Part shown: in pieces, positions 3,490 to 62,045 of the stretch
How the letters are laid out: every line of letters begins with the position of its first letter
How positions within the stretch are numbered: the stretch's first letter is position 1
Sequence record: NC_021529.2
Strand: one strand, 5' to 3'
Length of the DNA stretch: 64,000 bases
Position numbers and translations under genes: made by a program
The notes under the pieces: model-generated
Told to the model about the DNA's origin: nothing
What the model saw: the letters and a program-made list of their open reading frames with translations, nothing else
The model's database searches: none

Positions 3490-5027
3490 TGTCAGGAACA
3501 AACATATTCACGCACATTAGTGACGAGGCTCAATATGTTTACCTGCAACCGTTCGTATCGCCTGGCGCAGCTTTTGAGTCAGGCGGTGACGTACAAAGTA
3601 TCATAGCTCAAATTAACGAAAGCGCACTACAACCAATTCCTGCATTACCTTACGCGACGACTAGCGAAGATGGGGCAGTTGAATATTCAACCCAAGCTGA
3701 AGCTAATGGTCTGAGCAGTCTTTTGACAGTGCTAACACCTGAATCTCTAGATTGGGTAGATCAGTTCGTATCGCCGGCTACTGATACTCAGTTGGGTAAC
3801 TTACAAGAGCTGAGTTCTGGCGATTTGACTCGCGATTATGCAACGTCAAACGCAAGTAAATTGCTTTCATATCGTCGTCTAGATGAAATGATGACTGTTC
3901 GTGCTGCACTCACTGATGATGGCACAGACCAGTCTCGTGGATTTCTTGAATTTGCAAATTTATCAGAATCATTAGCGTATGCATCTGATAAGTTCATTTC
4001 ACCACTTAGAACATGGAATTTAATCAAGCAAGAAATTCCAAACCCATGGTCTCAAGCAACTGAATCAGCAGTCGGTATTCTCAGAACAGTTGCTCCTCGT
4101 GATGGGAAACGTTCTGATCCGTCAATTGCAATTACTGTAGGTGGGTTAAATCATGTTGACGCAAGCACTTCAAAACGCGGTGCATTTAAATTAACATCAA
4201 ACAACTACAATCGAACCGCAAGTGATGCTAACGAGTATGTAGTAACGCCCGGTACTATTTCAAATCTAATTGCGACAGCAGGTCAAGTTGGGTTTATGCA
4301 ATTGCCTGCATCATACGTCAATGATCCACTGTTGACAACAAACGCTGCTCTAGGTGTTGATTTAGCAACAAAGTTGGGTCCTGACGGTGGTACTATCACT
4401 GGTACATTACAGTGTGATAATATCCAAAGTCGCTTGACATACAGACAAAAACAAACAAGCTATAGTGGCACATATTACACAACGGTCGTTGAAGATCGCG
4501 AAATGTTCCCGAGTAATCAGTTAGATTCTAAAATAGGTCTTGCTGGTAGACCAGTAGGCAGTATTTTCCATTGTACTGCAAACGTAGACCCAAACACTGT
4601 ATTTGGCGGCGTGTGGTATAGAGTACGCGCAGGTCAAACAATGATGGGACAAGGTACTGGCGATGACGGTGCGAGACGACGTTACTTTGCAGCAGGCGCG
4701 CAACGCAATGACGATACCATTACGCTGACGCAGCGCAATCTACCGACTCACAAACACGCTGGGTTCGGAGAAGCGTATAAATCTGTAAATGGCGACTGTG
4801 TTCGTTACACGATTTTAAGAAACCCGTATGGGGTGTCTTTGTATTGTACTGAATATTCACGCGCAGAGTACTGGGAATTTGGTTCTACGGGAGAACGAAA
4901 TCATAGGGGTATGCGTAAAACAGATAGTGACAATTACCTATATTACAATGAGCCTGTTGGTGGTGGTCAAGCACATGAAAACATGATGCCATATCAAGCT
5001 GTTTACATTTGGAGACGAGTTAAATGA
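3489..5027 (+). CDS. 12: short tail fibre gp12-like protein, paralog A (512 aa)
   Basis: gp12-like N-terminus (HISDEAQYV...PYATTSEDGAVEYSTQAEA), AT-x-G fibre repeats, and a PVGSIF...HKH...PYQAVYIWRR C-terminal domain. Confidence 0.75.
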   Translation: MSGTNIFTHISDEAQYVYLQPFVSPGAAFESGGDVQSIIAQINESALQPIPALPYATTSEDGAVEYSTQAEANGLSSLLTVLTPESLDWVDQFVSPATDTQLGNLQELSSGDLTRDYATSNASKLLSYRRLDEMMTVRAALTDDGTDQSRGFLEFANLSESLAYASDKFISPLRTWNLIKQEIPNPWSQATESAVGILRTVAPRDGKRSDPSIAITVGGLNHVDASTSKRGAFKLTSNNYNRTASDANEYVVTPGTISNLIATAGQVGFMQLPASYVNDPLLTTNAALGVDLATKLGPDGGTITGTLQCDNIQSRLTYRQKQTSYSGTYYTTVVEDREMFPSNQLDSKIGLAGRPVGSIFHCTANVDPNTVFGGVWYRVRAGQTMMGQGTGDDGARRRYFAAGAQRNDDTITLTQRNLPTHKHAGFGEAYKSVNGDCVRYTILRNPYGVSLYCTEYSRAEYWEFGSTGERNHRGMRKTDSDNYLYYNEPVGGGQAHENMMPYQAVYIWRRVK

Positions 5028-6445
5028 GTAAAGGAACTCAAATTTTCAACCACGTGATTGACGACGCTGGGACAGTCACGGTAGAAGTTGCGGGCACAGC
5101 ATTTGACGGGTTGACGGGTGGCAACGATGATCTTCAAACATGTCTTGAGCTTATTCAAGATCACGCACTTTCTGCAATCCCTGACTATCCGATTGCAAGC
5201 ACAACAGTCGCTGGTCTTACTAAGCTGAGCGGAGACGCTGAAGTCGTAGATCCACTCAACAATGACAGTGCAGTAACACCGAGCGCACTTGATTATTGGT
5301 TTGAGAATCACGCTACTGCTACTGAAGCGCAATTCGGGTTTGTCAAGTTGATAACAACGTCAACAATTGACACAGTAAACCCGACTGATCCAGTAGAAGC
5401 AGCTCAGAAGCACGCATTCACGCTGAAGACGTTGAACTATGCGTTGAACAATAGATTCCACGCATCTGAGACGAAAGCTGGTGTTGTGCGCCTAGCAACG
5501 AATGCACAAGCGACAACGACGGGTACACTGTCAACCACAGTAGCAATGACTCCTCAGCGAGTCAAAGAAATGCTAGATGTATGGGCTAACACAACTGCGT
5601 CAAATGCGTCTGAAACTACAAAAGGGTTGATACGCTTAGCAAATGGCACAGAAGTGAACAGCGTTCTTGTAGCTGAAAATGATTTGGCGATATCACCATA
5701 TCGTTTCAATTTCAGAACAGCAACTACGACTAGAAAAGCAGGATTTTATTTGCCTGATTCTACAGTAGCCAACGCTAGAACGTCGAATGATCATGCTGTT
5801 ACTGTTGGAACACTTTCATTGTTCAGTGCTAATAGCTCACGTGTCGGTGTTGCTAGACTAGCTAACAATCTTACAACAAATGACCCACTAAGAGCACTAA
5901 GTGCAGCAATGGGTTATAAGTTGAATAATGAAAAAATCGGTGCTGCCGGTGGTACTATTACAGGAACGTTAAAGGTAGACGACATTCAATCTGTTGGTGG
6001 TACTCAGTTAATGAGCAACGGTCTGATTGAATCGACTGCAATGCTTAACATGTACCCTGTTGGTTCAGTATACATGTCAGCTAATTCAACGTCACCTGCT
6101 ACATTATTTGGCGGTACGTGGTCTAGATTAGCTGAAGGTAGAGTTCTAGTTTCTGAAGGTACATATGCTGGAAGAACATTTGCTAACGGCGAGACTGGTG
6201 GTGAATATGAAGTTACTCTTACTGAAGATACAATGCCAACTCACAAACATGCTGGTTGGGGTGAACATCACGACGGTGATGGTCTAGGATTCGGTATTGC
6301 ATATCAATACGGTCGAAACAACAGAGGTTCTGGTAAGTCTGACAGAGACAACTATTTGTACTACTCATCTCCAGTGGGTGGTGGACATGCACACAACAAC
6401 ATTCAGCCATACTACACTGTTTACATGTGGGAAAGAACTGCATAA
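5024..6445 (+). CDS. 12: short tail fibre gp12, paralog B (473 aa)
   Basis: Same architecture as paralog A: ASETKAGVVRLAT repeats, YPVGSVY...HKH...NIQPYYTVYMWERTA. Confidence 0.85.
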   Translation: MSKGTQIFNHVIDDAGTVTVEVAGTAFDGLTGGNDDLQTCLELIQDHALSAIPDYPIASTTVAGLTKLSGDAEVVDPLNNDSAVTPSALDYWFENHATATEAQFGFVKLITTSTIDTVNPTDPVEAAQKHAFTLKTLNYALNNRFHASETKAGVVRLATNAQATTTGTLSTTVAMTPQRVKEMLDVWANTTASNASETTKGLIRLANGTEVNSVLVAENDLAISPYRFNFRTATTTRKAGFYLPDSTVANARTSNDHAVTVGTLSLFSANSSRVGVARLANNLTTNDPLRALSAAMGYKLNNEKIGAAGGTITGTLKVDDIQSVGGTQLMSNGLIESTAMLNMYPVGSVYMSANSTSPATLFGGTWSRLAEGRVLVSEGTYAGRTFANGETGGEYEVTLTEDTMPTHKHAGWGEHHDGDGLGFGIAYQYGRNNRGSGKSDRDNYLYYSSPVGGGHAHNNIQPYYTVYMWERTA

Positions 6446-6483
6446 AGACAAGCATAGTATAGCGTGAAAGACAATATGAATAA

Positions 6484-6513
6484 ACGGGTGAGATTCATTT
6501 CTCACCCTTTTTT
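6484..6513 (+). terminator. intrinsic terminator after gene 12B
   Basis: GGGTGAGA-ttcatt-TCTCACCC followed by a T6 tract. Confidence 0.85.
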
Positions 6514-6519
6514 GTATGA

Positions 6520-6645
6520 GCGAAGCGACAGAAGTTGGTGAGGCGGAAAAATTCCGCATCATCTTAGTAGTATTAGGGGTTTTAGAGATATTAGTAATAT
6601 TAGTATTAAATACTATGTTTAGTTTTTGACTGCATCTGATATTAT
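6520..6645 (+). repeat. non-coding module, copy 1 (GCGAAGC, stem-loop, five 9-nt TTAG units, GTTTAG-N17-TATTAT promoter)
   Basis: 6540-6603 matches the reverse complement of 33693-33756 at 57/64 positions (hand alignment). Confidence 0.85.
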
Positions 6646-6685
6646 AGACGCATAAAGACAAATCCTTCCGTATCCTTTGTATTGC

Positions 6686-6693
6686 TATAAATA
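6686..6693 (+). promoter_or_regulatory. gp55-dependent late promoter for wac
   Basis: TATAAATA, the T4 late consensus. Confidence 0.85.
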
Positions 6694-26366: not shown

Positions 26367-27545
26367 CTAAGCGACGAACGCTACACGCTGTACGATTGTC
26401 TGTTTTTCGTCACGAAACTCGCTGTGCTCTTTTACAGTAGCTTTAATCGTGACTTCTTCGCCAGCTTCGATTCTATCATCGTCGTTGTTGCGTAGACGTT
26501 TGCTACCAAACCAGATGATTAGATTGTTTTCAGCATCACGGAAGCGGTGAATGAATGTGTCGCCGTAGTAGCCTTCAGAAACGATTGTTTTCTCAAGTGT
26601 AACAGTGAAGTTCTCGCGTTTTTTAACAGTACCAACGTGCTCTGATTCTGGTAGTTCAGCTTTACGCTCAGCTTCGCGTTTAGCAAGAATTTCACGCTCT
26701 TTTGCTTTATTGAAAGCAACGATTGCTGCTGCAATGAAACCAGTTTGTTTGTACTCGATGAACTGTGCGCCACATGATGAGATTACATTGTGCATGAAAT
26801 CGTTAGTAGCTTCTTGTTCAGAAACCCATTCTAAGATTTCTTTTGCTCGTGCTTCGTACTTGTCGTAGTCGTATTCAGCAAGCATTCTATCACGCTCTTC
26901 ACGCAATTCTTTTGAATGAACATTGATCATGTTCAAAATCCACTGACGAGTGATACCACCACCATGGTATGCGCCGTTGTGCTCAACGTAAATCGCAGCC
27001 CACGTAACAATCTGAAGTGCATTGTATGTTGTTTTAGAAGAACCACGACCCCACGAATCTTCGTCATTGAAGCTATCAATTGCAACGTAAAATGTTGCTA
27101 GTGAATCGATTGATTTTGTAGGCAAGTAGTATTTCAGGCATGAACCACCAACGCGCATTTCTTCTTTTGTTTCTTCGTTTTTAATAACGTAAGTAACGTT
27201 GCGCTGACGATTAGAGTTGCAGTGATCACATGTTGTGTCACCTAGAAGATGACGGTGATTAGTCTCGCTGTTAGAGCGAATTAGATTTGATGCGTGATCA
27301 AGTTGAGTTAAGAATGACCAACCGTTTTTAGAAGGGTATTCGCCACTGATAGTAACATCTACGTAGTAAACACGCTCTTTAACGTGATTTACAATGCGAA
27401 CTTCAGAGTATAATTCGCCGAATTCAACAGTGATAGGTGCAACGTCAAGACGTTTAGCGATTTTGTTAGTCGCTTCGATACGTGCGTTGAATTCGTTCAT
27501 GTAGATTGTGTTGATTGTGTAAGTAGTTTCGAATTGGTTAGTCAT
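26367..27545 (-). CDS. early protein with a CDHC...C putative Zn site and a C-terminal OB-fold-like domain (392 aa)
   Basis: CDHCNSNRQRNVTYV...VGGSCL; C-terminal HVGTVKKRENF...ATVKEHSEFRDEKQTIVQRV. Confidence 0.6.
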   Translation of the reverse strand: MTNQFETTYTINTIYMNEFNARIEATNKIAKRLDVAPITVEFGELYSEVRIVNHVKERVYYVDVTISGEYPSKNGWSFLTQLDHASNLIRSNSETNHRHLLGDTTCDHCNSNRQRNVTYVIKNEETKEEMRVGGSCLKYYLPTKSIDSLATFYVAIDSFNDEDSWGRGSSKTTYNALQIVTWAAIYVEHNGAYHGGGITRQWILNMINVHSKELREERDRMLAEYDYDKYEARAKEILEWVSEQEATNDFMHNVISSCGAQFIEYKQTGFIAAAIVAFNKAKEREILAKREAERKAELPESEHVGTVKKRENFTVTLEKTIVSEGYYGDTFIHRFRDAENNLIIWFGSKRLRNNDDDRIEAGEEVTIKATVKEHSEFRDEKQTIVQRVAFVA

Positions 27546-27615
27546 AATTTGCTCTCTTAGTTAGTCGATGTCGTTTCGATATAGAGATAATACGACTTTA
27601 TGGTGATAGTGTCAA
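27543..27615 (-). promoter_or_regulatory. early promoter plus conserved leader (copy 1)
   Basis: TTGACA-N17-TATTAT, then ATCGAAACGACATCGACTAACTAAGAGAGCAAATTATG. Confidence 0.85.
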
Positions 27616-33225: not shown

Positions 33226-33635
33226 ACTATTCCACTCTCAATTTTTCTGTTATCAATAATGTGTTTAATTGTGAATCCCATTTGGCTAATGCCTTTCAGG
33301 GCTTCTTCGATGAAAGACAAAGTATCTTTCATGTGTTGAAATGTCGCGATTGCGCGTTGCAATTCATTATCACCCGCAAGCGCATATTTCATTTCGCTTT
33401 TCTCGACGATGAAGTCACAAACTTCGTCATCGTGTTTACCGCTATAAAACAACCAGCGGTCTTTTCTCACAGCTTCCATTTTCATTTCAGCTTTAATAAG
33501 AAGTTGTCTAGCATCGGCTCGATATGCAAGCCACTTTGCATGAAGAATCGGAATTCGAATTGCTGCTGTTTCTAATGCAGTCGTGTCGATCTTAACATCT
33601 TCTTTGTATTCTGTTTTTAAGTCTTGTAGCTTCAT
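33222..33635 (-). CDS. uvsY: recombination mediator UvsY
   Basis: EDVKIDTTALETAAIRIPILHAKWL; 137 aa. Confidence 0.93.
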   Translation of the reverse strand: MKLQDLKTEYKEDVKIDTTALETAAIRIPILHAKWLAYRADARQLLIKAEMKMEAVRKDRWLFYSGKHDDEVCDFIVEKSEMKYALAGDNELQRAIATFQHMKDTLSFIEEALKGISQMGFTIKHIIDNRKIESGIV

Positions 33636-33653: not shown

Positions 33654-33774
33654 AGTATACGCTGATGATAGTAATTATAAACACGAATTGTTCTAATATC
33701 TCTAATATTACTAAAACCCCTAATTCTACTAAGATGAGACGGAATTTTTCCGCCTCTTACCTATTTTGCTTCGC
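33654..33774 (-). repeat. non-coding module, copy 2, including the uvsY promoter GTTTAT-N17-TATACT
   Basis: Reverse complement of the 6520-6645 module: GCGAAGC at 33768-33774, hairpin at 33736-33756, TTAG units, promoter at 33654-33682. Confidence 0.85.
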
Positions 33775-33778
33775 GTAT

Positions 33779-33800
33779 AAAAAAGCCCCGAAGGGCTTTC
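33779..33800 (-). terminator. terminator after gene 35
   Basis: AAAGCCC-ttcg-GGGCTTTTTT on the minus strand. Confidence 0.85.
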
Positions 33801-36511: not shown

Positions 36512-39500
36512 TTATATCGCGTGACCGAAAGTGAACTCCAGCACGCCTTGATTGTTCGTTGACATTCTTACTGTGCCAACTTGAATATAGTCTCTGTATT
36601 TAACACTCTCACCAGTACCACCGTCTGGTGTGAACAAGTCGATGCGTTCTGAAAGTGTCTTACCTGCACCTGCCGAAAGAGCTTGATGCGGGTCAGAAGC
36701 ATTCACTGGGTCTGCTGTACGAACATCATTTGTTACTTGAACGATACCTTGACTTGTACGACTTGACTTGATTAGTCGAGCGTTTGCAATTGTACCGCTA
36801 GTGATGTTCTCACCAGAGTGATTGTGGCTATTGTCGTTAACTTGCACGTTTGTTGAAACGTTTCCGCTTCCGTCAATTGTGAAGTTGCCAGTCAAGTCGC
36901 CAGTTAGTGTCACTGTACGCGCTGTAACCCACTTCTCAGCCGCCTTAGCTACGTTGTTAATACCCAAGTACTTCTGACGTAGTGATCCTGCTGCTGGGCT
37001 GCTGTAAGTCGCGTATGTTGCATCAACGTTTTCTGTTCCGCTACCTTCATGAATTGAACCTGCAACATACAAGCGAATTGAGTTGGTATCGGCTGCACCG
37101 TTGTTGATTTTAACAATACCAGATCCGCCTTGGAACGAAGTATCACCATCCGCGCCAAACAATTGGCGAACAGTTGCTGATCCATCTTCTCGGATGCTCA
37201 ATCCCGAAAGACTGACAAGAATATTCCATTCTTTATTAGATTGATCTGTTTCAATTAGTGTGAATCTTGGCGAATCACCGCGAACAATCAAATCATTCTG
37301 CGTGAACGTGTAGATGCCATTAATCACATCTGATTCGTCGCTACGTGCAAACTGAGTGCTATCAAGACCGTCTAGCAATTCTGAGTTGTCAGCAGTTGCA
37401 TGTAACGGCAAGTAGTTGCGTAATGCGTAATGTAACCCATACGGTGATACTGCATACGGAACACGTAAGTACGACGTATATGGCTGCGTAGAACCAACAG
37501 TGTCATTACCGACGAACGATTCAGCAGGTGTTGCAAGCTGAACAGTACCATATCTGCCTTCATCTGCACGTGAAGCTGCTGAATTGCGAGTCCAATGCTG
37601 CAATTTAGATGGTGTTACGATTGTTACATCACTAGTAGCTGAATCAATTTCAGCAGTTGTTGCAAGTTCTGCAATACCTGCTAGAGTTTCAGTTGCACGA
37701 CGTGCATTCAGCTTAGCTGGTGTGATGATGTGAACATCAGAACCACCAGTATTTGCATTTGCTTCAGCTTGCGTCGCAACTTCAAGCGTACCACGTTGAG
37801 TTTCAGTCGCAAGTGCAATTTCTAAGTTAATGCCATTCCAGATATCACCCGTATGTGAGATACCAGATACGCCATAACCCGCCCCTTGCAATACACCGTC
37901 ACTTGTGAAATGATCGTACGCAAGCCACGTTTTGAATTTCAGCGGACTAACAATATGCGTGTCAAGAACACCAGCATCAACTTCAACTTGTGTTGCAATC
38001 TCAGCTACACCACGACGTGTTTCAGTCGCTGAACGATTGTACAATGTTTCAGGAGTGATGAATACGTTGTTCCATGATTCACCTGAACCACTGATCGCAT
38101 TTGCTTCAGTTTGAGTCGCACGACGAGCAATACCACGAATAGTATCACTTGCTTTCCACGCTGCTAATTTCTTAGGCGTGATTATCGCGTCATCAACTGT
38201 TGAGTCGTTAATACGAAGCTCAGTTGACTTAGCAACCCACAATGTACCCGGCTGATTCTCAGTTGCTCGATATTCATCTAGCATCTTCGGTGTTACGATA
38301 CGTAGATGATCTGTCTTATCGTAAACTGTATCAACTAGGCCATTTGTAGAACGGTCTGAACGCATGTTCGCAGTTGATGAAACTGTGCCGTTAGCAGCAA
38401 TGTTATTTGATGCTTTTGTTAGCTCAGCAACACCAGTCAAGTTCTCTTCAGCTTGTGCCGCATGGAACTTCTTAGGTGACAGTACTTGGACATCGTTTGT
38501 TGTGCTACGTGTTTCAGTTTGAGTTGCAATCTCAACAACACCACGACGTGTTTCAGTCGCTGTACGTGCGTTCAAGCTTCTAGGTGTCACTACAATGTCA
38601 TGACGGAAGTTTGAATCTGGGTAACGTACAAGAGCGCCAGAACGTGATTCTTCAAGTGCCTCGCTAGTTGTCAACGAAGCGATACGAGCCATACCGACTT
38701 GATCTTCTGCTGCACGACGTGCGTCAAGAGTCTCAACGGTGATTACGTTGTCTTTCAGAGGACTTTGGTCAGCCCATGGCTTCGCAACGTCTTCTGGGTG
38801 TGCGTATTCAATACCGTGTGCAAGTGCTTCTGTCGGGTCAGCCAGTGGCACAATACCTGGGCGTTTACGATGTAGTTCATCTGCAACGTCGATACGAGTT
38901 GCAATGTTACCGAACGACCATACTTTGCGTGTGCCATCGTAGTACAGAACGAACGAGTAGCCACTGTCGTAGTCACTAATTTCGAACGATTCTACAAAGA
39001 ACGGTACAAAGTCAACATAGTGACGGTATTTCTGATAACGATATGTCTCAAAATCCAAGAATACTTTGTATTCATCAGCCCCATGACCAGGATCATCATC
39101 ACCGAAATTCGGGTGTACTTGAACAGTTACAGTTTTATGTGCTGTCTTGTTGTGTGAAATCTCAATCCAGTCACCATCTACTGGCTTTTCAGGTAGAGTG
39201 ATGAACATTTCTGAAACAGCGTCTGCAATTTCAATCGCGTAACGAGTACGTGGTTTAAGAGAAACCGTGCTCGATTCACCGACGTAGTTCCACAAGTGAG
39301 GATTGTTCGCAACAGTAACTAACCATACGCCTGTGCCTAGATCGTCGATGAATGTAATATCCGCGCCGCCGATAGTGTCAAGACTTATGACTGAACTTCT
39401 TACGCCTGAAATTGGGTCTTGAACTATCTGACCAGTTGACGACGGATGAACACCAATCTGAATTGATGTTTGATTCTCAAGATACGCAACGTCTTTTAGA

Positions 39501-41262: not shown

Positions 41263-41269
41263 AAAAACT

Positions 41270-41298
41270 GTTTATAACAACACGTGCTGCGATATAAT
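41270..41298 (+). promoter_or_regulatory. GTTTAT-N17-TATAAT promoter for dsbA-33-59-32
   Basis: Exact -10 and 17-bp spacer. Confidence 0.75.
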
Positions 41299-41899: not shown

Positions 41900-42512
41900 T
41901 ATATTTCGAGTCTATTGTGCTGTAAAAGCGCATATGGGCGGTAAGTATGATATCTCCAAGTACAAACTAGGAATGAAAACACCGCGTTCTGCATTCGATA
42001 AACGGTCAGATAAGGTGTTTTTTGAACGATTAGCCAAACGGCTTACACTGAATGACTGCTATCAGTTGCTTGTTAGTAACTTAGCAGCGAATCCAAATGC
42101 ACTATCGTATGAGATTTCAGGTGCTGACGCACATGAATTTTGGCTAAAACACACAGGTTTTTTAGAAATTTTCAGTCAGCACTATAAAAATGAGCTACTT
42201 TCGATTTTTACTCTTATAAATAAAGAGAATAAAAAATTCAAAGATTTGTTTAGAGGTGAGGGGCATCCAGTTATAATGCAACTCGTTCTACGCAATACTA
42301 TCTCAATCGAGACGTTTGTGATTCTGAACAGGTTATTGAATTTCGTCCCTGTAATCGACAAAGATTACTCGGATGACATCTTCTGGCACGAGTTCAAGAC
42401 GCGAGCTTTAGCATACGATAAGTTGCTGAAAATCGACGAAGAACTTGCTAAAGAAATGTTTATTCAAGTAAAAATCAAAGTAAAATTTAAAACATACTAT
42501 ACGATACAATAA
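41841..42512 (+). CDS. 59: helicase loader gp59
   Basis: VNGFSIFRVYCAVKAH, KRSDKVFFERLAKR, ISIETFVILN. Confidence 0.93.
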   Translation: MKRLLEVDLVLPRTWVNGFSIFRVYCAVKAHMGGKYDISKYKLGMKTPRSAFDKRSDKVFFERLAKRLTLNDCYQLLVSNLAANPNALSYEISGADAHEFWLKHTGFLEIFSQHYKNELLSIFTLINKENKKFKDLFRGEGHPVIMQLVLRNTISIETFVILNRLLNFVPVIDKDYSDDIFWHEFKTRALAYDKLLKIDEELAKEMFIQVKIKVKFKTYYTIQ

Positions 42513-43516: not shown

Positions 43517-44077
43517 ATGAAATCTAAACTCATGAAGGTTCAAATCGTTTTTGCTCATGCAATGAGTAAATCCCCACACGCCCCTTTCGGAAATCAAAAC
43601 GAACTCCCTTGGAAATTTAATAGCGAAGACTTATCACATTTTAAAAACGTTACGATGAACAGCGTTCTTGTGATGGGATCTAAAACTTTTGAATCCCTAC
43701 CGGGAAAACTCCCATTTCGACCACACATCGTTGTTAGTAGTCGTGCTGAAGCGACTGCGAAAGACGGGTCAAGACCAGATGTTTACTGTAGTTATGAAGA
43801 CTTTGGTCAGTTAATTACAAACATCGAAAATGTTTATCATATCGAAGGATTTGATACAATAAGTGTTATCGGTGGCCCTAGTGTTATCGAGTCTGCATTA
43901 CCTTTTGCAGACTGCATATATAAAACTACAATAGCTGAGAAAATTGAAGCGTATGACGTAACAATTGACTTGACAAAAATTACAATGCTCTTCCCGCATT
44001 CGGAAAGGCAGAATATCATAGAATGCACTAACGGTTCGACGATATTCATAGACAAGTTAACAAAGGGTGACTTATGA
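43517..44077 (+). CDS. frd: dihydrofolate reductase
   Basis: FGNQNELPW, DLSHFKNVT, VMGSKTFESLPGKLPFR, VIGGP. Confidence 0.95.
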   Translation: MKSKLMKVQIVFAHAMSKSPHAPFGNQNELPWKFNSEDLSHFKNVTMNSVLVMGSKTFESLPGKLPFRPHIVVSSRAEATAKDGSRPDVYCSYEDFGQLITNIENVYHIEGFDTISVIGGPSVIESALPFADCIYKTTIAEKIEAYDVTIDLTKITMLFPHSERQNIIECTNGSTIFIDKLTKGDL

Positions 44078-49794: not shown

Positions 49795-49868
49795 TTGCAT
49801 TATAAAACCAATGCGCGTAATATTAACTACATCGAAACGACATCGACTAACAAAGAGAGAACATTATG
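49795..49868 (+). promoter_or_regulatory. early promoter plus conserved leader (copy 2)
   Basis: TTGCAT-N17-TAATAT, then ATCGAAACGACATCGACTAACAAAGAGAGAACATTATG. Confidence 0.8.
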
Positions 49869-54506: not shown

Positions 54507-54509
54507 AAT

Positions 54510-54538
54510 GTTTATCGTATCGTGACGCCGTGTATAAT
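54510..54538 (+). promoter_or_regulatory. GTTTAT-N17-TATAAT promoter for primase
   Basis: Exact -10 with upstream TG. Confidence 0.75.
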
Positions 54539-57300: not shown

Positions 57301-57361
57301 TTGCGTTGTTGATGTGACTTGTGTATTATACTCACATCAACAACGAAAAGAGAACATTATG
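57301..57361 (+). promoter_or_regulatory. early promoter embedded in a perfect 14-bp inverted repeat
   Basis: TTGCGT-N17-TATTAT; CGTTGTTGATGTGA / TCACATCAACAACG arms; AAGAGAACATTATG leader end. Confidence 0.75.
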
Positions 57362-57583
57362 AGACACACACTTGATTTCAAACATGTATGGTTTGTCGTT
57401 GAAATTAAAAAGCGAAAAATCGTTGCATTTGAAGAGCACGACATGTATGCTGGTGGTCAATTAAAACTACCGACAGATAGAAATGTCACTGAATGGGTTC
57501 GTGCTAAGATGCATGGTCGCGTTCACGGTGAAGTGATGATCGACAAGATTGACACTTTCCTAGAAGAGCATGTCGATCAATAG
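57359..57583 (+). CDS. early hypothetical protein (74 aa)
   Basis: ATG after the AGAGAACATT leader. Confidence 0.6.
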   Translation: MRHTLDFKHVWFVVEIKKRKIVAFEEHDMYAGGQLKLPTDRNVTEWVRAKMHGRVHGEVMIDKIDTFLEEHVDQ

Positions 57584-61648: not shown

Positions 61649-61718
61649 CAGATGTCAGCCCTTTTTTGTATTATAGCTTTATCGAAACGACATCGACTAA
61701 CAAAGAGAGAACATTATG
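61639..61718 (+). promoter_or_regulatory. terminator hairpin overlapping an early promoter, plus conserved leader (copy 3)
   Basis: AAGGGTTGACA-ga-TGTCAGCCCTTTTTT contains the -35 TTGACA; TATTAT 18 bp later; 38-nt leader identical to copy 2. Confidence 0.8.
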
Positions 61719-62045
61719 AATGACTTAACTAAATTCGACATCAGATTTTCTGAAATCAAAGTTGTTTACTCTATCGGTGCAGAACACCAAAAAGTAGCAA
61801 TGCGTATTGAAGATGGTACAATTATGTTGCATGAAGTTTTGTTCATTGATGCGAAAGGTTCATATTGTGAAACTCGTAAACTTTGGAGCACTAAAGTTGA
61901 AAAGAAATGTGCATGGCCAGGTTACGAATCAGCTCAATTAGTTGATAAAATCAAAGCAGCAGGTAAAGTGTCACTTCGTCACTGGCGTGCTGCATCTGAA
62001 GCAGATTACGAACTATTTCGTTTAACAGAAGCATTCGAGGGTTAA
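61716..62045 (+). CDS. early hypothetical protein (109 aa)
   Basis: First gene after the leader. Confidence 0.7.
   Translation: MNDLTKFDIRFSEIKVVYSIGAEHQKVAMRIEDGTIMLHEVLFIDAKGSYCETRKLWSTKVEKKCAWPGYESAQLVDKIKAAGKVSLRHWRAASEADYELFRLTEAFEG

Follow-up and report, generated by a model that had tools for sequence, protein, structure and literature searches.

Why should a block of DNA recur, with its parts in one order, at junctions between functionally unrelated genes of a single phage genome, and what might read it? The question is raised by a 64,000-nt stretch (hereafter the window) of the genome of Vibrio phage nt-1 (NC_021529.2, record bases 124001-188000; window base 6300 is record base 130300), in which the top and longest inverted repeat pairs positions 6540-6603 with the reverse complement of 33693-33756 over 64 nt at 89% identity (57/64). 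By the record annotation, one copy of the repeated module separates wac from the second gp12 short-tail-fibre gene, and the other, on the minus strand, separates uvsY from gp35. A preliminary description of the window had noted this match and, in each copy, a succession of terminator, GCGAAGC, hairpin, five TTAG units and promoter-like site, with the last two units swapped between copies; re-analysis recovers all of these at the same coordinates. It had read them as two replication origins with a family-specific initiator or activator and had named a structured ncRNA or an activator cassette as the alternative, both of which are retained below as competing readings. The module proves to be a non-coding cis element of ~130 nt, present at six fixed, well-spaced places in the genome, for which a part in starting replication is here favoured, tentatively, over regulatory, RNA-level, recombinational and coding roles.

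Six copies in one genome and their distribution among phages

Within the window, a pattern of four TTAG units at a 9-nt period, with one mismatch allowed, matches five times and always inside the two copies, against an expectation of 0.00 and none in 100 shuffles. Pattern searches of the whole nt-1 record return exactly six copies of the module, and a covariance model built from 27 copies, run over the whole genome up to E=1, scores those six at 88-97 bits and finds no further or decayed copy there, even a weak one: copies are either intact or absent. What had been described as a two-copy duplication is a family of six, placed in the record as follows (ORF, open reading frame):

Copy A, ~51.3 kb, plus strand: ORF125 upstream, ORF126 (function unknown) downstream
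Copy B, 104.2 kb, minus strand: gp3 upstream, gp1 (dNMP kinase) downstream
Copy C, 130.5 kb, plus strand: gp12 upstream, wac downstream
Copy D, 157.7 kb, minus strand: gp35 upstream, uvsY downstream
Copy E, 200.9 kb, plus strand: SprT-like ORF327 upstream; glutaredoxin-like ORF328, gp24 and gp55 downstream
Copy F, 245.2 kb, plus strand: ORF403 upstream, ORF404 downstream

Every copy, in all phages looked at, is oriented with local gene transcription, and by annotation the genes downstream of the six are functionally unrelated. Gaps between copies around the 247.5-kb genome are 53, 26, 27, 43, 44 and 54 kb; the calculated probability that six random points leave a smallest gap of at least 26 kb is ~0.007, and as the even spacing is a single inherited arrangement it is suggestive only.

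A sensitive BLAST search with the 156-nt module against 50,697 phage records matched 51 Vibrio phage records, plus one spurious match; the former include nt-1, KVP40, ValKK3, VH7D, phi-pp2 and the oyster-derived D and K series. Six places per genome are usual (range 5-7, with 1-4 in three partial records). KVP40 and VH7D carry their copies at the identical six sites with equal spacings, and phages occupying the same six sites have genes that are 15-30% diverged. Seven places are found in phage 1.081.O, the most diverged of the genomes, and among sites B-F its extra copy is a tandem duplicate at B: at the gp3/gp1 junction (minus strand) the whole module is repeated with starts ~165 nt apart, the second copy being without an upstream terminator. 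Copy number and conservation in relatives, both left to a sequence search by the preliminary description, are thereby supplied.

Further afield, an exact-pattern scan of metagenomes yielded three contigs that carry the module, the IMG/VR viral collection contained it only in KVP40 and VH7D, and no match came from an exact-pattern scan covering the genomes of 185,579 bacterial and archaeal species. The module appears limited to KVP40-like Vibrio phages, none having been found in other phages or bacteria. A generic scan of viral contigs for five TTAG units produced >120 matches, many of them to giant viruses, which were not inspected and are not used here. Rfam 15 gave no match at the gathering score and chance-level matches only at E up to 10. 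A literature search, with the KVP40 genome paper lying outside it, found neither a published account of the element nor any transcriptome or origin mapping for these phages. In the text of the nt-1 genome paper, PeSL terminator/promoter cassettes are described and the module is not mentioned (PMC4122927).

Anatomy, base pairing and constraint

The two copies in the window, with their immediate surroundings, are composed as follows, offsets being counted from the TCATC anchor. At wac, all on the plus strand:

6440-6451: left copy of a 12-nt direct repeat, GCATAAAGACAA, overlapping the stop codon of the second gp12 (offset -119)
6486-6513: intrinsic terminator of the gp12 late transcription unit (found by scan: 8-bp stem with 5 G-C pairs, then a T run)
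6514-6539: 5' arm of the module, with GTAT, AGCGAAGCG (GCGAAGC at 6520-6526) and a spacer of variable length
6540-6560: hairpin, GAGGCGGAA-AAA-TTCCGCATC, with a 6-bp core
6559-6608: linker TCATC (invariant) and five 9-nt TTAG units, TTAG starting at 6564, 6573, 6582, 6591 and 6600
6616-6645: TGTTTA-class promoter-like site 5' of wac, TGTTTA-N18-TATTAT, which fails a plain sigma-70 scan
6650-6661: right copy of the direct repeat GCATAAAGACAA (offset +91)
6686-6693: wac late promoter, TATAAATA, given as context outside the module, in a stretch 95-97% conserved among phages

At uvsY, all on the minus strand:

33779-33800: intrinsic terminator 3' of gp35, with GC stem, TTCG loop and T run (read from the sequence)
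33757-33778: 5' arm of the module, with GCGAAGC at 33774-33768
33736-33756: hairpin, GAGGCGGAA-AAA-TTCCGTCTC, with 9 contiguous pairs, one of them G-T
33684-33737: linker TCATC, five TTAG units starting at 33732, 33723, 33714, 33705 and 33696, and a degenerate sixth (TTCG)
33654-33683: uvsY promoter, TGTTTA-N18-TATACT, matching 9/12 positions of the sigma-70 consensus; the uvsY ATG is at 33635

The promoter that the preliminary description placed at both sites thus passes the sigma-70 scan at uvsY and fails it at wac, and the separate late promoter that it assigned to wac at 6686 is present. The terminator at 33779-33800 shares its form with the stem-loops reported for nt-1 PeSLs (PMC4122927).

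Alignment of the 27 copies gives the general order: a GTATCTGAAG-type stretch, AGCGAAGCG, a spacer, the hairpin, a TCATCTTAGTAG(W)ATTAG stretch and the phased 9-nt TTAG units. GCGAAGC was rightly counted as part of the module, which reaches further 5' than first described, to the shared GTATCTGAAG-type stretch; this 5' arm (the stretch together with AGCGAAGCG) is missing in nt-1 copies E and F. The spacer between arm and hairpin runs to ~8-22 nt, with length changes that are not multiples of 3, and TCATCTTAGTAG is identical in 25 of the 27 copies. The units conform to TTAG-W-R-R-W-W and keep a strict 9-nt period, TTAG being retained in 133 of 134 scored units; five per module, as originally stated, holds for the wac and uvsY copies, the range in the family being 5-7 (six in eighteen copies, five in seven). 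Over the 670 positions between TTAGs there are 282 A, 220 T, 155 G and 13 C, so that C makes up 2% of the spacers against 20% genome-wide whilst G is as frequent as normal. AT accounts for 69-81% of the array, compared with ~58% in the flanks.

GCGAAGC by itself is unremarkable, occurring 10 times in the window against 6.8 expected, and its meaning comes only from its recurring relative position: it returns at the matching place in nt-1 copies A-D (4/6) and in most copies of related phages, but not in nt-1 copies E and F or in several of the copies at the wac site. As DNA, d(GCGAAGC) forms a stable mini-hairpin, a property notable in DNA rather than RNA.

The hairpin proper is the sole consistently predicted structure of the module, the remainder being unstructured. 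Its 6-bp core, GCGGAA/TTCCGC, closes a loop of AAA and extends to 9-10 pairs. In KVP40 copy B and in VH7D copies B and F this stem is replaced by GCCCAA/TTGGGC, that is, by two compensatory double changes (G-C to C-G) in 3 of the 27 copies, and both versions coexist in one genome. Paired cells amount to 86% in the alignment and 83% in shuffles, none of 500 of which matches the observed value, the covariation coming from three sequences. Pair 6:20 is a G-T wobble in 12 of the 27 copies and a G-C pair in 11; in 1.081.O, the second of the tandem copies at site B shows T-G at pair 7:19. Such wobbles pair on the top strand only. The top strand also folds 1.7-2.3 kcal/mol better than its complement (at the uvsY copy, -8.8 against -6.5 kcal/mol). 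These substitutions suggest that the hairpin is selected as a structure, and the coexistence of compensatory stems argues against a dimer binding site. Both base pairing and base composition are strand-specific.

How strongly is the module held? In same-site alignments across phages, the hairpin and first units (a 40-nt core) have a mean pairwise identity of 0.93-0.95, compared with 0.70-0.85 for flanking coding sequence and 0.35-0.60 for flanking intergenic DNA; by this measure the module is more strongly constrained than the neighbouring genes. Over a 66-nt core, copies that share a site in different phages have an identity of 0.878; the value is 0.856 for copies from a single phage and 0.850 when both site and phage differ. 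These values carry no tree-like signal, and all copies are held to one consensus in which a few positions toggle between allowed bases. That copies are equally alike within and between phages suggests one common reader, since a single factor reading all of them would yield such a one-consensus pattern; the family-specific factor proposed at the outset draws support from the same observation. It is thus very probable that the module is a cis element, non-coding and under selection, whose copies share one reader, and whichever function holds, it points to an uncharacterised factor that would read all six sites.

One copy departs from the consensus. At the wac site of phage K566, three consecutive units carry TTCG, TTCG and TTCA instead of TTAG, still in the 9-nt phase, whilst the near-identical 6E35.1a keeps TTAG; the K566 copy may be a variant that has lost its function naturally. 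K566 is also among the genomes with only five BLAST places.

Coding, exchange and transcription

Could the module simply encode something? In the nt-1 wac copy, 6516-6629 could be translated as a 37-aa ORF, which would make the module a small gene for a hydrophobic peptide; the frame with TTA-Gxx codons is free of stops by construction, its product is rich in leucine and valine, and ORFs are annotated at the wac-site module in CZ01, QD01, F86, K566 and 6E35. An ATG-started ORF in that frame exists, however, in only 2 of the 27 copies, and 13 have no start codon at all. A 1-nt difference in the wac-site spacer of KVP40 and VH7D (in KVP40 it is the longer by that base) makes the ATG-started ORF read the array in another frame, giving an unrelated peptide, and the compensatory stem changes, which would alter three residues, argue against coding. 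Leucine is moreover always TTA and the next codon always begins with G, a constraint at the level of nucleotides. On its start codons, its frame shifts between phages and its fixed codon usage the small-ORF reading is rejected, being almost certainly wrong, and the hypothetical proteins that several related genome records carry across the element are probably spurious calls, a point of some relevance to annotation. At copy A, ORF125 and its KVP40 and VH7D counterparts extend into the 5' arm, where AGCGAAGCG encodes Ser-Glu-Ala, and terminate 0-9 nt ahead of the hairpin, always at an amber TAG, with the open frame of the array continuing in phase; this continuation may be a coincidence or a remnant.

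A second possibility is that the module is a recombination or shuffling cassette: a PeSL-like repeat that would have spread early in this phage lineage, would be kept uniform by gene conversion and would have no dedicated function, acting just as a junction at which genes are exchanged. PeSLs are reported in nt-1 (PMC4122927), and in copies B, D and E a sigma-70-like promoter does come after a terminator of the A3-4G3-loop-C3T3-4 type, as in PeSL cassettes (PMC2839356, PMC4122927). Copy A lies within the variable 51-56 kb region, and the gene that follows it differs between nt-1 and KVP40/VH7D with the point of exchange exactly at the array edge; the genes on either side of sites A and F showed no homology. 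In six phages (the bearers being nt-1, KVP40, VH7D, K566, 6E35 and one metagenome contig) an 8-12-nt direct repeat stands at both ends of the terminator-module-promoter cassette at wac; this looks like the scar of an old cassette insertion. Copies in 1.081.O share lineage-specific spacers and units which, with the tandem duplicate at B, indicate gene conversion. Several features nevertheless sit badly with a cassette of no function: the same six sites are filled in phages whose genes have diverged by 15-30%; the covariance-model search shows no decayed copies; the core is more conserved than coding DNA, with some positions invariant and others toggling; flanking repeats occur at one site of the six, no conserved target-site duplication being found at the other five; and repeats under no selection should, in a lytic phage proficient in recombination, give rise to deletions and disappear. 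The resemblance to PeSLs also has its limits. In those cassettes the stem-loop stands immediately 5' of an early sigma-70 promoter, ribosome-binding site and ATG, whereas the module interposes 80-130 nt; the module occurs without PeSL parts in copy A and in the second tandem site-B copy and wac copy of 1.081.O; and it has six fixed copies against dozens of variable PeSLs. A mere cassette thus seems improbable, with a small chance of being correct.

The neighbouring promoters raise a stronger possibility. The pattern TGTTTA-N16-19-TAYWMT occurs six times in the window against 0.43 expected, 5' of wac, uvsY, dsbA, gp32, ORF271 and gp61, with others elsewhere in the genome. The pattern scan places them as follows:

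6616-6645: TGTTTA-class site
33654-33683: TGTTTA-class site
41269-41298: TGTTTA-class site
42247-42277: TGTTTA-class site
43831-43860: TGTTTA-class site
54509-54538: TGTTTA-class site

Genome-wide, TGTTTA-N16-18-TATAAT outnumbers TTGACA-N16-18-TATAAT by 7:1. These promoters form a general class, plausibly early (prereplicative) and mostly without a module, which may be the counterpart of the T4 middle promoters because the phage has AsiA and no MotA (AsiA is present and MotA not recognisable in KVP40 and nt-1; PMC2988021). A promoter-like site with a GTTTA-type -35 adjoins four nt-1 copies (a full TGTTTA in three), and five of the six lie 0-30 nt upstream of some promoter-like site. The preliminary description made this promoter a component of the module, a view that has to be rejected: the class is general, it is missing from some copies and its distance varies. 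Copy A in nt-1 and its KVP40 and VH7D counterparts have no promoter, and the wac copy of 1.081.O runs directly into the late promoter with no TGTTTA-class site. The promoter is a frequent neighbour of the module, not a component.

Proximity of this kind is nonetheless what would be seen if the module were a transcription-control cassette, its TTAG array offering duplex-DNA sites to a phage or host regulator (the missing MotA-like function, DsbA or a nucleoid protein) that would activate, repress or insulate the early promoter that follows. The five promoter-linked copies each point towards their site, the array abuts the -35 region at site E in all four phages examined, and at sites D and E the array-promoter junction is conserved among phages. 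The unit consensus, TTAG-W-R-R-W-W, is one that a protein could recognise through the major groove of a duplex, and dispersed operator arrays under one consensus are typical of phage regulators. AsiA without a recognisable MotA, finally, leads one to expect an unidentified co-activator (PMC2988021). Set against these points are the copies without an early promoter just described; a distance from array to -35 that is not fixed (0 to ~30 nt between sites, and 23, 27 and 26 nt at site B in three phages); the TGTTTA-class sites at dsbA, gp32 and gp61 in the window, which have no module; and six downstream genes that do not form a functional group. Binding to duplex DNA would also leave the stem covariation within one genome and the top-strand-only wobbles unexplained. 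We regard transcription control as possible, if unlikely.

The module may, alternatively, act as RNA. A transcribed element would have a 5' hairpin and then a UUAG/UAG repeat, poor in C and unstructured, to which an oligomeric RNA-binding protein would bind or which RNase E would cut, and would control translation or decay of the neighbouring mRNA. All copies in all phages point with local transcription; G-U wobbles and compensatory changes are found in the stem; the near-absence of C in the spacers would keep the RNA unstructured; and the array runs up to the start codon, of different genes, at site A and in two metagenome contigs, where its last units supply the ribosome-binding site. The start codon keeps this position at copy A in KVP40 and VH7D despite the change of gene, and copy F is preceded by a stop codon and followed by a terminator hairpin overlapping a TTGACA promoter. 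The NAG-repeat operators of TRAP and HutP and the operator of T4 gene 32 likewise have a structured nucleation element followed by an unstructured C-poor UAG tract; they differ in triplet spacing (NAG triplets are 2-4 nt apart in TRAP/HutP sites and 6 nt apart in the module) and in that most module copies are shielded by terminators, although at site A the tract reaches the start codon. Indeed, four of the six nt-1 copies, and their counterparts, start 5-25 nt past a strong intrinsic terminator, with no promoter between that terminator and the module and the next one lying 3' of the array. The module has no terminator of its own, none following it except at copy F; Rfam offers no match; and the GCGAAGC mini-hairpin is noted as DNA, not RNA. 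An RNA role for the element as a whole is thus distinctly unlikely. A related candidate, a Rho-loading (rut) site on the antisense RNA, was dropped on finding that the C of antisense CUAA mostly follows A and not a pyrimidine.

A possible role in replication, and remaining features of the window

The reading tentatively favoured, without being rated probable, is a replication function, in which the cis element would act as opened single-stranded DNA for origin or primosome loading. The six sites would be where the duplex opens and a replisome or primosome loads. The AT-rich array would serve as the unwinding region, its opening aided by negative supercoiling behind the adjacent early (prereplicative) promoter; the opened top strand would fold into the hairpin and the GCGAAGC mini-hairpin, and would show its phased TTAG units to a phage-encoded reader of single-stranded DNA, whether initiator, helicase loader or primase; and the first fork would exit along the local direction of transcription. 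This origin reading is favoured because: 1) the downstream genes form no regulon; 2) the promoter geometry is loose; 3) four of the six copies are shielded from upstream transcription by terminators; 4) the copies are few, fixed and evenly spread; 5) the AT-rich array adjoins structures that form on one strand only; and 6) one copy coincides with the position of T4 oriF. The more specific joint claim, of a sequence-defined, six-copy set of origins or primosome-loading sites read as single-stranded DNA by a phage protein through two hairpins and phased TTAG units on the non-template strand, is held more loosely and must be called doubtful. If true, it would provide the first consensus origin motif in the T4 family (Straboviridae), with an initiator yet to be named.

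Comparison with T4 cuts both ways. In T4, five or more origins are scattered over the genome, most of them in late-gene regions, and oriF lies at the uvsY promoter (PMC3016281), and the module resembles this arrangement in copy number and dispersal as well as in having a copy at the uvsY promoter, T4 ori(uvsY)/oriF. The T4 R-loop origins oriF and ori(34)/oriG pair an early promoter with an AT-rich stretch of ~50 bp, which are paired here too. However, they use a MotA-dependent middle promoter, and phages with the module have no recognisable MotA (PMC2988021); the T4 Mot box is at -30, whereas the adjacent sites here have TGTTTA at -35 spacing. Their AT-rich element lies downstream and is covered by the transcript, whereas the array lies upstream and the promoter is dispensable. 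T4 unwinding elements, moreover, have no sequence requirement and no shared motif, in contrast to a module that is sequence-defined and common to six sites.

The likeness to iteron origins (T4 oriE, plasmid and lambda), implied by the description of the units as iteron-like, lies in evenly spaced direct repeats beside a GC-rich element. DnaA-trios are strand-specific repeats in an unwinding region. So are the 13-mers of RK2 TrfA (PMC4081077), and the module repeats are strand-biased like such regions, which an initiator reads as single-stranded DNA. The period of iterons is 12-22 bp (classically 17-22-bp helix-phased repeats, and 12 nt at T4 oriE) against 9 nt here. The oriE iterons are evenly spaced (PMC3016281). 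Iteron origins have one or two sites per replicon, usually with the initiator adjacent, as against six sites here with no adjacent initiator found. G4-type single-strand initiation signals may also be likened to the module, consisting as they do of stable one-strand hairpins followed by an unstructured tract on which primase could start. The exact heptamer of the d(GCGAAGC) mini-hairpin occurs in the module as well, being missing from nt-1 copies E and F and several wac-site copies.

Several results weigh against an origin. Firstly, with the array upstream of the promoter and the unwinding element of T4 R-loop origins downstream, the T4-type R-loop layout that the preliminary description had in mind does not hold, and the known T4 origins have no motif in common (PMC3016281). 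By annotation there is no copy at the gp34/rnh junction, the place of T4 oriG. Secondly, the initiator that it postulated is not in evidence: the nt-1 annotation, in which most genes are of unknown function, lists no initiator-like gene, and Pfam detects no DNA-binding domain in eight genes that adjoin copies A, E and F or lie close to them (ten genes, including three regulator candidates elsewhere, gave only SprT-like, glutaredoxin, DsbA and DUF matches). No DnaA box (TTATCCACA with up to one mismatch) occurs from -200 to +250 nt of the TCATC anchor in any nt-1 copy; the consensus for IHF has one match, 66 nt downstream of copy A, within ORF126. Thirdly, copy A is squeezed between two co-directional early genes with a start codon at the array edge, which fits an RNA role better, and a transcribed RNA element would equally explain why all copies point with transcription. 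The 9-bp period is much below that of classical iterons, and the stem covariation is modest, probably reflecting one or two events. What endures of the original origin-like description is a selected non-coding cis element with phased, iteron-like units, a real hairpin and a copy at the uvsY promoter, the place of T4 oriF.

Two further candidates were set aside. The units TAGTATTAG and TAATATTAG are similar to the TAGTATTAC-type nonamer that is nicked in a hairpin loop by HUH Rep proteins; they end in G, however, and are tandem and outside the hairpin loop, which is AAA. The nt-1 annotation holds no Rep gene, the proteome not having been scanned for one. A connection with DNA modification was considered as well, nt-1 DNA carrying sparse 7-deazaguanine at ~348 modified bases per million nt (PMC6884629), and was dropped as DpdA2 alone modifies plasmids in E. 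coli (PMC10516641).

The wider interest lies in how T4-type phages choose where to start replication, a process that is poorly defined: in T4 at least five origins have no shared motif, and the role of the oriE iterons is unresolved (PMC3016281). A short element that exceeds its neighbouring genes in conservation and occupies six fixed sites in a well-sampled phage group offers an experimental handle, with Vibrio natriegens as an easy and non-pathogenic laboratory host, and being sequence-defined and multi-copy it makes origin choice, or the missing prereplicative regulator, directly testable.

Some minor features of the window may be recorded here. RefSeq places the nt-1 wac start at ATG 6704; a conserved GGGAAC ribosome-binding site followed by ATGACAATTCAAAAG leads to 6715, the type of start annotated in F86, K566, 6E35 and 1.081.O, and probably the true one. 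A second repeat family consists of a leader of 45-57 nt, 86-93% identical between copies, made up of TATCGAAACGACATCGACTAAC, then AAGAGAGAACATT, then ATG. It stands before the start codons of ORF251, ORF277 and ORF302, and partly before that of ORF291, as a shared 5' untranslated region and ribosome-binding site:

27537-27593, minus strand: leader repeat
49824-49868, plus strand: leader repeat
61668-61724, plus strand: leader repeat
57342-57368, plus strand: weaker leader repeat

Within the minus-strand gp34 proximal tail-fibre gene, imperfect direct repeats of 35-75 nt at 37641-38722 are internal coding repeats, and the two adjacent gp12 genes are tandem paralogues, 71-80% identical between 4370-4427 and 5932-5989 and between 4743-4772 and 6236-6265.

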